NCBI GenBank assembly: GCA_038496445.1
Contig: JALMLS010000344.1
Span: 248,001 to 312,000 of the forward strand
Direction of reading: 5' to 3'
Origin: Trichosphaerium sp. ATCC 40318
Taxonomy: Eukaryota; Protista; Tubulinea
DNA length: 64,000 nucleotides
The notes beneath the pieces were generated by a model, which was given only the letters and a program-made list of their open reading frames with translations, had not been told where the DNA came from and did no database searches. Shown in pieces: positions 2,764-9,332 of this stretch. Position numbers and translations under genes: made by a program. Each line of letters starts with the position of its first letter. Positions within the stretch are counted from its first letter, which is position 1.

Positions 2764-3377
2764 ACTTAGAACGTGAAACCCTAATGGAGTTTCCTGACTG
2801 GTGCAGAGAACTACTTGATCTGACTTATAAGTTTTATTTCCATAGACCTAGAACTGCTTTTAACAACCTAAGTTTTAAACCGAAAAAGTTGCTGCACGCG
2901 AAAACAGGTGCGTCACAGAAGCTTCCAAGTAACAAGGCGCAAACTACAATAATTTGATACCATCAGTTGCTTTTTCAATACCATCGGTCTAAAACTTGCA
3001 TCCCTTTACTCTACAACAAACTTTCGAAAACAATTCTGACTTTCGGCTAGTACTAGCGAAAGAGATAATTAAAAATAGCTAACGAAGTCGTAAGGAGTTT
3101 GCCTATTAACCCCTTTAACACCAACTACAACAGCAAGTCATAAGACGGAGTACCTGCCCGAAAAAAAGCCAACACCGAAAAACCCGCGGTGCGTACACAA
3201 AATTCAAATATTTGATTACTCGTTTTTTTTATTTATTGATAGACACCCATTACTCCATATGTACACCCAATATACATTCATTATTACAAAAATATTCTCC
3301 TTAAACCCACTTTCGTTTCGCGCCGTAAACGCGCACTCATAAAAACCAGGTATTTTAAATCATAACCTTCAACTTAC

Positions 3378-6300
3378 TTACTAATACAGTGTCAGGATGA
3401 GTAAACGTAGAAAAGGAGGTAAAAACAGCAACGTACGTAATCGCCTAAATCCGTCAAAGCCACCACGATTTCTGTTGCGGAGGGTCTCGACTTAGGGTCC
3501 ACTCGCGTACAGGCATCAATGAACTGCGGCAACAGTTAAATTTGCGTAAACGCAACTTGAAAGTAAAGGGCGTACGTTAATTATTGGTTGATATGGTCCA
3601 CGAAGCGCATCAGGTATCTAAATTGTATTTAGAAGCAATACTACCTAACATCTACTCACCTTTGGTAACGCCCCAGGGTAGTGTTCCTTTTTGCTGGAGT
3701 GATTGCCTTTGTGCTGCCTGAGAGTCGTTAGCGTATGATCTACAAAAAAGTTGGCGTGCCAATTCTGTATCTGCATCATTTGTCGTGGTAACTCCAGAGT
3801 TAGAACATTATTTAACAATACACCATAACTCCAAACTACAAAAAAAATTTGTTAAACATGCATGTCTACGCAAAAAACAACACTTACTATCTGCTTTTTC
3901 TGTGTATGCCGCATTAGACTGATTACCAATTACCTCTGGAGCCTTTTGAAATTATTAATGTTCTTACTGAGTTGGTAATGTCGTACAATAAAGCCTGGTG
4001 TCCCAACTACCGTTCTACATGCAGTGCCTGCTACAACTTTTGAAACACCCTATTATCTCGTTAGCTTGAGTGTTTGTTTAGCTTTCGTACAAAATCACAT
4101 AAAGCAACTCTGGGGAATCGCTTGGGCCCTTCCGATAGTGACACGAGAACATCTTGAAACAAACAAAGTGAGTAAAAATTCATTGGTTGAGAAAAATGGT
4201 GTCGCGTACTGTTACACTTAATATCACGGTGTACAATAGGAGGCTTCATGCTATGCAAGTATTTGAGTCCACGTGCAACCTGTGGAACGCTTAGCGACCG
4301 AAACCGAGTACAAGTAAATGACGTACGCCGAGTGCAATTTCTGCAATATGGGTCATAGCGAAGGGACGATTTGTCATTTGTTGTTGAACTACGCAACTGT
4401 GAAGGCTGTGCGGAATATATTCCATGAACAAGCGCAAGGTTTTTTCCCTTTGGTGGAGTGTCAACGAAATCTAAAAACTTAGTAGTCTCTTATAGTACCT
4501 TATTTCGTGTCCTAAATACGTAACAATGTTCTTGTGGCTCATTGATTCAAGAATTGTCACTTCCCTATCGAGAATATCATTCTCATGTTTGCTCAGCGTG
4601 ATAGGCTGTTGAAATGTTAGAAGCATGTCAAGAATAAAAGAAAAGACTAGTTGCGTACACGCTCAATAGACTTCACTGCACATGTAAATCCAGCGATAGT
4701 ACACCTATGATTGTTTAGCAAATGACATGCTTTATACATCTAACATACCTGTGCACTTGACCATATGTGCCTGAGCCAAGTTGCTCGTGGAATACAATAG
4801 TCGCCGTTTTGAAATCTGGCAATGGAACATATCTTTCTCGTGCTGGTGGAGGCGCAGGACCACACAACATACCGCCTGCGTGCGGTAGTGATGAACCACC
4901 AATGCCAAGTTCTATAGTTTGTTGAGTCAATATATCTTTGGAGTAAAGGATTTGTGCTTACTTGGACTGTTACCACGTTCTAAGCTTAGCATTGGTCGTT
5001 GTAGCTCCTGTGAACAAGTGCCATTCACAACAGGCTCTGTCACATTCACCCTTGTGTAACTTCGAGCCTACAAAATAGTTTATAGAAGCACAAAACAAAC
5101 AAAAGACATACCTTTTCAGAGGTCTCAGGGTACAGTGTTGTAGGATCATGCATCACGTCAACGACATAAAATTGGGAATTTAGATAAACAACATTCCACG
5201 CATGGCCAGCTGAACAAGTGTTAATACTAAGAATGACAACATACAAAACCAGAACGTACTTGCTGGCTCTCCATAGGAACCTTTCACGAGACGACATGGA
5301 ATACCGTTTCGATCCGCCAAGTACTTGAACAAAATCGCTCGATGACGGCACACGCCGTGCGTCACGCTTAAAGACAAGTTACGAAAATAATCTACAAATA
5401 CTCGCTTCTTACCATCCAATTGGCACAATATTTCTTCCAACAACTGTACGCACGTGTTGACATACAGCTTTGCTAAGCCTAGGCGCTAAGTTAGTCCGGT
5501 TTTTACGATTTTCGCAAAAACTGCTCGGCATTGACTTTTTTTTTTTACGATTAAAAGTCATTATCACGAAATTACAACCATGGCAGACTTAGCAAAAGGA
5601 CAAAAGTTATTTAAAAGCAAGTGCGCGCAATGCCACACTGTCCAAGAGGTACAGAATGGTCAAACAACTCACAAAGTCTCAAAAACGCTCTAAACGCTAC
5701 CACAATATGAAAATGAGTTTCTTCGTCACTTTGAGACAACAAAAAACAGATTTTGATGCAATTTTTGAGATCCAACAAAGATTTTAGGGTGCTCCAAGTG
5801 GTCAAGGACCAAACTTGTACGGTCTCTTCGGACGTACTTCCGGTACCGTAAAAAACTACAACTACAGTGTCGCCAACAAGAAAGCTGGTACTTGAACGCG
5901 TAATTTTTTCAAATGAACTCACCAATTGTCAAGGTGTCGTCTGGGAAGAAGACACACTCTTTGATTACTTGCTCAAGCCAAAGAAGTACATCCCAAAGAC
6001 AAAGATGAACTTTGGTGGTATCAAGAGCGCAAGCGTACGTTTTATAAAGGTTTTACAGCAAAGCGTCAAAAAAAAGAAAAAGGCGCTGAAAAAACAAAAA
6101 AAATGCTAAATGTTATCTTTTTTAGGACCGTAAAGACCTCATCGCTTGGTTGAAAGAGAACACTGGCCCACACGTTTAAGAATTTTCATCATTCTCCAAA
6201 TTTTTGTTGTTGCTGAAATAAATGGCGCACCCTTTAAGATTACATTCTGGTTTTATATCTTCAACTTGTGATCCACCCATCACGTTAGACACGTACATGG

Positions 6301-7766
6301 CGAGAGCCTTTATACGCGCCTCCAGGTCTTTGAATGCCTGCAAAAATCTCTCGGCGTTCTAATGGAAAAGTGAGTACGCATCACGCTAGTACGCGCTACT
6401 ATGCTTACCATAACGTGGTCTTTCAACCTGTTACAGAAAAGTTAGCGAAATTTACGTGTTACGTGCATACCTGCAGTCCTTTATCTCGTCGCAAAGGATA
6501 ATTTCGCGTTCTGGCCCCAAGTTCTCAGCTAGTACAGCCAGTTTTCTAAACTACAAACATCTTTTTTAACGAACAAATAATTACCTGAAAAAAATTATGC
6601 TCGGCAGTACCTCTTTGATGCTACGGCCTAGAAGTGTCACAGTAAGTAAAAAAAATTATCATTGTATCATTTTTATCAACGCACCTGGGTCATAGAAGCC
6701 ACAAAGCATGATTTCTTTTAGGTCAAGAACACCCTTACGGAAGAACTTTTTACTTTGCTCTAAACAGGGTTTTCTATTAGTGCACAAAAAGACATGTTTG
6801 CTTCTTACTTTCTGCAGGAGAAAAGGTTGTTTTGTCAATACGCCTAAATATCTCGTGCGCTGCATGTGAAATACTTTGTAACGTGTTGTCAGATGCATCC
6901 TCGACTAATTCCGGTGGTTAGTGACTTGAAGACAAAAAGCGGTTATTTACCGAACGCTTGTAAAGACCGTGAAGATTGCGGGCACAGTTGCTTGGGAGTA
7001 GCTCCAAAGTTGTTACGTGAGTGCCTGTCTGCTCCGAAGCTCAGTAGATCTCTAACAGCCTAACAGAAATTCAATACTGAGCGTTGAATTAACGTGTATA
7101 TTTCTACTTACTTGTACATTATCATTTTCTGCTGCCTAAATGCATAAGAGAGTCAGAATAACAACCATTTTTAGAAAAGCAATAAGTTTACCTTATGTAA
7201 CGCTGTATTACCACTCCAGGAGTTGCCTTGAGTGACTAGTTAGACTTGACATTTTCGTTTTACGTACGATGATTGATAATAATATCGGCACCATGCTTTG
7301 CGTAGTACAATATGAGCTTCAAAATTTCATTGTGATGTTTCTGAGCGCAAATAATGAGGCAGCTGTTACCTGAAATAAAAGTTGGTTAAATATTCACAAG
7401 TAGCCGTTACTATCGCTTAGCCGCACCTTCAGCAGATAGAGCGTTTAATTTTGCTAATGTAAGTAAGCTGACGAAAGCTGGAATTCTTTGTGGAAGGGAA
7501 TCTAAAAAAACAGTGTAACTTACCTCCTTTCGATATCAAGTATATAAAAATATCTATTTGGTTCTCTTCGCACGCTACGGCAAAATTTAGCGTATAACCT
7601 ATTACAGCGTTCATTCCTCACCTTGTAGCAAGAGAGTTGTTCTTTCTTGTTGAAAATAGTGGTTTACGCCAAGAGGGAAGCCAGCAAGCGTGTTTCGTAG
7701 AGTCGTTTTGTCTCCTTTCGAAATTGCGTTAAACAACACAGGTGTGGTTCTTTCAATCTGTATCAT
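3378..7766 (-). CDS. Ankyrin-repeat + EDR1-domain + Ser/Thr (TKL/Raf-like) protein kinase, multi-exon; hosts a nested gene in intron 5479-6230
   Basis: ATG at 7766 ([19 protein letters not shown]) precedes ankyrin exons. EDR1 motifs are [37 protein letters not shown] and HAWNVV. Kinase motifs LGSGTYG, CAVK, HRDIK, DFG, GTPGFIAPE are intact. Confidence 0.88.
5580..6179 (+). CDS. cycs: Mitochondrial cytochrome c (4 exons), nested antisense in a kinase intron
   Basis: Exons assemble as [23 protein letters not shown] / [19 protein letters not shown]...ANKKA / [34 protein letters not shown] / [17 protein letters not shown]. CxxCH heme motif and axial Met are present, with three GT-AG introns. Confidence 0.96.
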
Positions 7767-8041
7767 GCTTGGACGTTATAGAAGGGATTTTAGTGTAGAC
7801 TCTAAATGACTTTCTTATTAGAATTGGATTTAAAGCGACAGTTTGTAAAGGAAGGTTTCTTGCATACTAATTTGCCTAAAGTGTTTTCAATTCAGTGTAG
7901 AAAGTTTTTCCCGCGAAAAAAAGGTTGTTTGTGGTGTTTTTTTTCATGAAGTGAGACTTGTGCTGAACCACCTTCAGTATGCGCTGAAAAAGTTCGCCCG
8001 TGTAATTTTGGCGTTATTACTGTTTAACTTACATTGTACAA

Positions 8042-9332
8042 ATGGCTTCCAGCGGAATAGTTTTAGGGCTTGATGGTGGCGGTACTAAAACGAACGCGTG
8101 TTGTATCTCTGTGGACACAAAGCAAGTTCTAGCTACCGCAACAACTGGTGGTTCAAATCCAAATTCTGTTGGTGATGATAAAGCCAAAGACGCTGTTATG
8201 TCGTCCTTACACGAAGCGCTTCGCAAGGCCGGCATGGAGAAGGCTTCAGGTTCGCAAACGAGTTAAATATTTTGAAGTTTTCCTTCGTCTGACTTGTAAA
8301 TTGAACAATTTTGCTGTTTTTTAACACACTCGTTTAGTGAAGGCATTGTGCTTATGCATGGCTGGAGTTGACAGGCCAGACGATATAGCAAAAGTCAAAA
8401 AATGGGTTGCGACTGACTTTGCTGAGATACCGTGCGTACAACGTCATCATTGCAAAGTTGGTTGAACATTTTTTTAATTTTTATTTGTCACAAATGATTG
8501 TTTTGAATCTTATCATCGCTTGTAGTTGCTTTGTTTACAACGATGCAATCGCAGCGTTGACGACTGGCACAAAAGGAAAGTTAGAGGGCATCGTTACCAT
8601 TTCTGGCACTGGCATGATCACTGTAGGTTTTAGTCCTGGTTCTATGGAGCAATTACGAGCATCAGGGATGGGGTACGTCTTTTTATTATTTCAAAAGGTG
8701 TCATTTGGTATTCATGATTAATGGCAGACCTCTTCTTGGCGACCGTGGCAGCGGGTATGATATTGGAGTAGACCTCTTGCGCAAAGTCTGCGAGGCTGAC
8801 GTACGCTATCAGAGTGAGTGGCTTCATTTAAATATTAAACAAGCTCTAGGATGGTCGTGGTCCTAAAACTATTATGACATCAATGCTTTTAGAACACTTA
8901 AAGTTGTCATCGGTAATGGATTTAATTGGTTGGGCGTATGGAGATAAAGAGTGGTCAAGATTTGCTGCCCTCTCTAGAATTGTGTACAAGGCATACTCCA
9001 AAGGTGACGAGATGGCTGTTGAAGTTATAAAAGGAGCTGCCTCGGATTTGGCATGTAGTGTTATGGTAAGTTTTTTTTTGGACTTTTTTGACATTTTAAG
9101 TATTTATTCGTTGAGATAGGCAGTAGTAAAGAGATCTACCTACAAATTATCAGATGAGATTCCAGTCGTGTTTGCAGGTGGCAACTTAGAGCATGAGGGT
9201 AGTCCTTTGGCTGAATTAACAGAAAAGGCGCTCCGCGAAAAAGTGCCAAATGTTAAAATTTTAAAATGCACCACAGACTACTGCGTTGGTGCTGGTTTGG
9301 TTGCTATAACCAAATTGGACAGTACCAAATAA
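8042..9332 (+). CDS. N-acetylglucosamine kinase (BadF/BadG/BcrA/BcrD ATPase family)
   Basis: Motifs GLDGGGTKT, GSNPNSVG, MAGVDR, NDAIAAL, ISGTG, LLGDRGSGY and VFAGG; all introns are GT-AG and keep frame. Confidence 0.9.

Follow-up and report, generated by a model that had tools for sequence, protein, structure and literature searches.

Anatomy of the host and guest genes

We examined a locus in a 64,000-nucleotide (nt) stretch of the genome of Trichosphaerium sp. ATCC 40318 (contig JALMLS010000344.1, positions 248,001 to 312,000; hereafter the window, whose first letter is position 1), where a cytochrome c gene on the plus strand lies wholly within one intron of a larger gene on the minus strand. 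The larger gene, here called the host, occupies positions 3378..7766 of the minus strand, with its ATG at 7766 and its stop at 3380-3378, and in our model comprises 29 exons, whose 766 codons specify a protein with ankyrin repeats, the EDR1/CTR1/ARMC3 peptidase-like domain and a predicted protein kinase domain. The window is AT-rich eukaryotic DNA (37.6% GC) with very short introns. Splice sites of the host were curated by hand from the sequence, after which the exon chain was checked by a script that found GT-AG borders at all 28 introns and an in-frame stop in none of the 29 exons. While 27 of the introns measure 39-70 nt, with a median of 50, intron 13 (5479..6230, minus strand) is 752 nt long. 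The initial annotation had rightly singled it out as far longer than its neighbors, though the factor of about ten given there falls short of the ~15-fold excess over the median that we measured.

Intron 13 is a phase-2 intron with a donor GTGCGC starting at 6230 and an acceptor CCTAG ending at 5479. Upstream of it, exon 13 (6231..6358, minus strand) carries the last part of the EDR1 domain's N-terminal half and closes in ...ECNLK plus GG; downstream, the first base of exon 14 (5413..5478, minus strand) completes the Gly codon that the intron splits. These coordinates and phases agree with those originally proposed for the interrupted frame, including the start of exon 14 at 5478 and a branch-point-like ACTAAC at 5490..5495 of the minus strand (read from 5495 to 5490), which precedes the last base of the acceptor AG by 11 nt. 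Most host introns, intron 13 included, carry a CTAAC/CTCAC/CTGAC/GTAAC-like motif ~8-17 nt from the AG. Host donors are mainly GTACG (the commonest), GTAAG or GTATG, and GTGCG is used three times, at intron 13 and at the introns at 7426 and 6684. Alternative host paths through shorter introns inside the 752 nt, from the donor at 6230 to acceptors at 6163, 6106 or 6086, were rejected because in homologues the sequences that correspond to exons 13 and 14 are too closely spaced to admit added residues. Elsewhere in the gene, a stretch that was first taken for an ankyrin exon turned out to be the 47-nt intron 1, and three micro-exons of 19, 24 and 27 nt (6409-6427, 7112-7135 and 7427-7453, minus strand) lie between introns of ~50 nt, of a kind that gene finders easily miss.

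The domain content of the host was read from Pfam scans made exon by exon. An Ank match was found at 7385-7263 (20.9 bits), and the frame of exon 15 (5260..5366, minus strand; ending PCRLVKG) matched the EDR1_CTR1_ARMC3_pept family PF14381 at profile positions 140-172 with an expectation value (E) of 1.1e-12 and 48.6 bits against a cut-off of 27. Exon 15 forms the core of the EDR1 domain and contains the Cys of a Cys-His-Asp triad; the residues expected of a transglutaminase-like fold are all found in the host chain, as Cys in GVCRHRA, His in GHAWN and Asp in VVDVM. Exons 9-14 gave no match in the per-exon scans. Two host exons matched Pkinase below threshold (21.1 and 13.3 bits against a cut-off of 31.7, each scanned as a single exon), and the kinase motifs GSGTYG, AVK, HRDIKCNN, DF|G and APE are all present, in that order, along the exon chain. 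Compared by domain order alone, the host resembles the plant EDR1/CTR1 Raf-like mitogen-activated protein kinase kinase kinases (MAPKKKs) in that a PF14381 domain precedes a predicted C-terminal Ser/Thr-type kinase whose motifs are intact, whereas it differs from them in its N-terminal ankyrin repeats and its length of just 766 residues.

The guest is a complete cytochrome c gene of four exons at 5580-6179 of the plus strand, as the initial annotation had proposed. Its coding sequence runs for 107 codons plus a stop, has no internal stop, and is interrupted by GT-AG introns of 139, 46 and 91 nt. Exon 1 (5580-5648, plus strand) carries the CxxCH heme-binding motif as CAQCH and matches PF00034 with 24.4 bits against a cut-off of 21.3. 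Exons 2 and 3 cover consecutive residues of solved mitochondrial cytochromes c, with E of 1e-5 to 1e-10: exon 2 (5788-5887, plus strand) matches residues 34-67 of 2yk3 (E = 1.7e-7) and residues 28-59 of yeast iso-1, and exon 3 (5934-6034, plus strand) matches residues 60-96 in yeast numbering (E down to 1e-10), including Trp59, Tyr67, KKYIP and the Met ligand in KTKMNF. Exon 4 (6126-6179, plus strand) ends in the stop and is colinear with the C-termini of six environmental proteins, P0001-P0006. With its ~107 residues, CxxCH, GPNL, Trp59, Tyr67, KKYIP and Met80 ligand, the product thus resembles mitochondrial cytochromes c such as PDB 2yk3, 1ccr and yeast iso-1 (1ycc), and differs from them in a Lys in place of the Gly of PGTKM (IPKTKMNF). 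The PGTKM sequence is near-universal in mitochondrial cytochrome c. The corresponding PKTKM lies at 5985-6005 (plus strand) in exon 3, and the Lys recurs in all six of the environmental proteins, which were retrieved by a word search; its presence in every one of them suggests that a Lys beside the Met heme ligand may be a lineage-wide variant.

The locus at 5580-6179 is the sole PF00034 match and the sole match to the exon 3 frame in the 70.3-Mb assembly, so that within an exon-by-exon, six-frame search this appears to be the only cytochrome c gene. In two environmental relatives (L007 and L017), the whole length of exon 2 aligns as a block of its own, set apart from exon 1 on one side and exon 3 on the other, and introns 1 and 2 hence appear to be old and shared with these relatives. 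Such shared intron positions would mark the guest as an inherited cytochrome c gene and rule out a retrocopy. Among two-fold codons ending in a pyrimidine, 23 of 29 end in C in cytochrome c (79%) as opposed to 96 of 191 in the host (50%; Fisher p = 0.0045). The codon bias reported in the initial annotation is hence real, but modest rather than strong; in this small sample, it fits high expression.

The cytochrome c coding sequence (5580-6179) takes up 80% of the host intron (5479-6230), leaving 101 nt before its ATG and 51 nt after its stop, close to the ~100 and ~50 nt estimated at the outset. We consider it very likely that the locus is an ordinary nested-gene arrangement, that is, one host transcription unit with a single cytochrome c gene predicted to lie antisense in its intron 13.

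An EDR1 domain split by intron 13

A central question for this reading is whether the sequences on the two sides of intron 13 belong to one domain. A PF14381 search of the 70.3-Mb assembly yielded four loci besides the host. At one of these (L003, contig C46), an exon ending in ...TLALFVSSTMGGANGL covers PF14381 positions 64-110 and the next exon covers positions 111-170; host exon 13 aligns with the former (score 54), and host exon 15 aligns strongly with L003 as well as with the paralogues L001 and L004. A further homologue, the 156-residue environmental protein P0007, is a single fragment retrieved by a word search with the EDR1 core exon, and in it one uninterrupted open reading frame (ORF) spans PF14381 positions 94-202 (E = 6e-23). 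We aligned the host exons singly to P0007, using 300 shuffles of each exon as a control. Exon 13 aligned to residues 2-28 (z = 11.2), exon 15 to residues 67-95 (z = 22.6) and exon 16 to residues 100-131 (z = 19.3), each with a score that none of its 300 shuffles reached, and exon 17 aligned to residues 132-147 with a weak but colinear match (z = 1.9, score reached by 13 of 300 shuffles). Because the flanking exons are colinear with a homologue that carries both sides in one ORF, the sequences flanking intron 13 are, by alignment, consecutive parts of one EDR1 domain, cut near Pfam position 117 of 203. The earlier assignment of both halves to the EDR1 domain is thus borne out by the Pfam match of exon 15 together with the colinearity with P0007 and L003.

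Several features of these homologues were observed along the way. The contig of P0007 (L023, JGI 3300042991, 975 nt) contains no cytochrome c and no kinase, and P0007 itself stops ~30 residues past the EDR1 domain; related protists may possess kinase-less EDR1-domain proteins, unless the contig is chimeric. In L003 (G000:C46, about 1590-1570, minus strand), a Glu replaces the putative catalytic Cys (GVERHRA as opposed to GVCRHRA), and its peptidase-like domain is for this reason probably inactive. The loci L004 (G000:C280) and L005 (G000:C44) are near-identical copies of an EDR1-domain kinase gene on separate contigs, with differing upstream flanks and with Kelch-like ORFs upstream of L005; they represent either a recent segmental duplication or unmerged haplotypes.

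The paralogues also bear on the age of the host intron. In L001 (contig C67), which has the same order of ankyrin, EDR1 and kinase, a 51-nt phase-2 intron lies exactly 21 residues before a conserved '(L/P)IG', the same position as that of intron 13. L004 and L005 have a phase-2 intron of 80 nt located 22 residues ahead of '(L/P)IG', as read from the DNA, and L003 has a phase-1 intron ~10 residues further upstream. As position and phase are common to two or three paralogues, intron 13 probably predates the duplications of the family, and cytochrome c would have entered, or expanded, an existing short intron.

Transcript signals and competing explanations

The signals around the two genes suggest how such a locus could be transcribed. 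On the plus strand, the only AATAAA within intron 13 lies at 6217..6222, 37 nt past the cytochrome c stop and 8 nt from the host donor. We infer that it is the polyadenylation signal of cytochrome c. If so, its closeness to the donor would place cleavage probably a few bases inside host exon 13, and the pair may be nested for their coding sequences yet overlapping for their transcripts. On the minus strand, the first AATAAA downstream of the host ATG is found within AATAAATAAA at 3228..3237, ~140 nt past the host stop; there is none between 7800 and 3238, intron 13 included, and the minus strand of intron 13 holds neither ATTAAA nor AATAAA. By our estimate from base composition, chance alone would yield roughly four AATAAA over 4.4 kb. 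Provided that this organism uses AATAAA as its signal, the absence of the hexamer from the host ATG down to 3237 fits a single host transcription unit. Upstream of cytochrome c, an exact 11-nt direct repeat, TTTTTACGATT, occurs at 5500-5510 and 5542-5552 (plus strand), 42 nt apart, with the two copies ~80 and ~38 nt ahead of the ATG. The repeat may act as a promoter element; across the window it is not enriched (five matches with at most one mismatch against 3.7 expected). Neither target-site duplications nor terminal repeats were found on searching the surroundings of the guest gene, where the 11-nt direct repeat was the sole repeat of note. Beyond the host ATG, a divergent plus-strand gene starts with an ATG at 8042, 275 nt (7767-8041) from position 7766; its product begins MASSGIVLGLDGGGTKT and may, by its resemblance to them, be a sugar kinase or a BadF-type ATPase. 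As this 275-nt gap between divergent ATGs means that promoter regions are very short here, the 101 nt before cytochrome c are less unusual than they may seem.

We picture the nested arrangement as follows. The host would be transcribed as one minus-strand unit from about 7766 to about 3230, and its pre-mRNA would read through cytochrome c in antisense, with the whole 752 nt presumably spliced out via GTGCGC, ACTAAC and CCTAG to join exon 13 to exon 14 in phase 2. Cytochrome c would be transcribed independently, from the ~100 nt upstream of its ATG or possibly from host exon 14 beyond, and its transcript would end just past the AATAAA at 6217, a few bases into exon 13. In evolutionary terms, intron 13 may have grown from ~50 nt to 752 nt as cytochrome c moved in by a DNA-level rearrangement.

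A number of observations weigh against a host that continues across the intron. A pattern for the exon 13/14 junction had 0 exact matches in metagenome and metatranscriptome contigs, a result that is uninformative as the species may be absent there, and the protein searches yielded no transcript-derived protein of this species. Direct Pfam scans left exons 13 and 14 unplaced, such that both were placed by alignment to homologues, and exon 14 alone aligned weakly to residues 18-39 of the L003 exon at PF14381 111-170 (score 34) and not significantly to P0007. The donor GTGCGC is less frequent in the host than GTACG and GTAAG. Furthermore, the frame of exon 14 extends upstream, uninterrupted by stops, to position 5591 of the intron and includes two ATGs, at 5561 and 5531 (5529..5561, minus strand), which overturns the initial claim that the downstream half has no in-frame start of its own, and exon 13 read through its donor meets a stop after 17 codons. 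With an open frame that holds two ATGs on one side and a read-through stop on the other, two separate shorter products are formally possible.

These last features form the basis of an explanation that we regard as improbable, in which two independent minus-strand genes flank cytochrome c: an upstream gene with the ankyrin repeats and the N-terminal part of EDR1 that ends at the TAA at 6178-6176, and a downstream gene with the C-terminal part of EDR1 and the kinase that starts at ATG 5561 or 5531. Both ATGs are in frame with no stop before exon 14, the upstream frame stops 17 codons past the donor, the putative catalytic triad falls entirely within the downstream half, and the search for the exon 13/14 junction in metagenome and metatranscriptome contigs found no match. 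Yet the break would fall inside a Pfam domain, near position 117 of 203, whose two sides are found in continuous ORFs of P0007 and the paralogue L003, and in L001, with its identical ankyrin-EDR1-kinase layout, a 51-nt intron interrupts the same codon in the same phase. Moreover, as neither AATAAA nor ATTAAA occurs on the minus strand of the 752 nt, the upstream gene would lack a signal to terminate it, and the promoter of the downstream gene would have to sit in the body of cytochrome c. Even less probable, in our view, is that the host is a decaying pseudogene broken by the arrival of the cytochrome c segment. Although the insertion is unique to this paralogue and the nesting was seen at no other cytochrome c locus that we fetched, no stop interrupts any of the 29 exons, GT-AG borders and a branch-like motif are found at every intron, the catalytic residues of the kinase and of the peptidase-like domain are intact, and the insertion lies exactly within a pre-existing intron with both splice sites spared.

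A different matter is whether the nesting has regulatory consequences, with strong cytochrome c transcription blocking or truncating the host by polymerase collision, antisense RNA or intron retention, to give mutually exclusive or anticorrelated expression. We deem this unlikely, if somewhat less so than a split into two genes. The opposite strands and the spacers of just 101 and 51 nt would favor it, as would the AATAAA 8 nt from the host donor, with its probable transcript overlap in exon 13, and the codon bias and single copy of cytochrome c, which point to probably high and constitutive expression; interference by nested genes has also been shown in some human cases (PMC3192792). By contrast, large surveys are described as finding that nested genes and their hosts do not, in general, correlate in expression (PMC3192792). 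The host is fully intact, which argues for continued expression under selection and against silencing over evolutionary time, and, as respiration is needed continuously, strict mutual exclusion would leave the kinase permanently silent. Interference or mutually exclusive expression, which the initial annotation took the nesting to imply, hence does not follow from it. One could go further and envisage an obligatory sense-antisense pair whose transcripts overlap in exons 13 and 14 and which couples the output of the respiratory chain to a stress/MAPKKK-like kinase by collision-dependent truncation, intron retention or double-stranded RNA, as a selected device and not a neutral accident, but we give such a scheme little credence.

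Nesting in relatives and in other genomes

To place the nested arrangement in time, we compared synteny by searching the contigs of the closest cytochrome c relatives (L007-L014 and L016-L022) with every host exon. These relatives are distant: they are environmental sequences with 62-81% identity in exon 3 and a GC content of 30-57%. No host EDR1, kinase or ankyrin match was found beside cytochrome c in any of these contigs, and as no host-like exon adjoins cytochrome c in distant relatives, the comparison indicates that the nesting is not ancient.

Genes lying in introns on the opposite strand are well documented in animals. In humans, the account in PMC3192792 puts the share of nested genes that are antisense to their host at ~63%, and a survey of 109 human and 752 fly pairs is described there as finding no expression correlation. 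In Drosophila, 2mit lies within intron 11 of timeless2 on the opposite strand (PMC3786989). The protist pair resembles these human and Drosophila cases (PMC3192792, PMC3786989) in that a complete gene with its own exons occupies one host intron that is far longer than its neighbors. It differs in that its genome is compact, with introns of ~50 nt, and that the spacers are as short as 101 and 51 nt with a probable overlap of transcript ends with host exons. Furthermore, the protist guest is the sole cytochrome c gene, and not a lineage- or tissue-specific one.

Overall, the locus is a further instance of a well-documented nested arrangement and is unsurprising to a specialist; it opens no new biological question, and any functional link between the host and cytochrome c would be hypothetical. 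Its value for annotation is that, in this genome, an intron of unusual length serves well as a warning of a concealed antisense gene. Gene-finding programs adjusted to introns of ~50 nt could break the host in two or overlook the guest. The locus also provides a clean natural case of a compact genome that tolerates an essential and, by prediction, highly expressed gene inside another one with almost no spacer.

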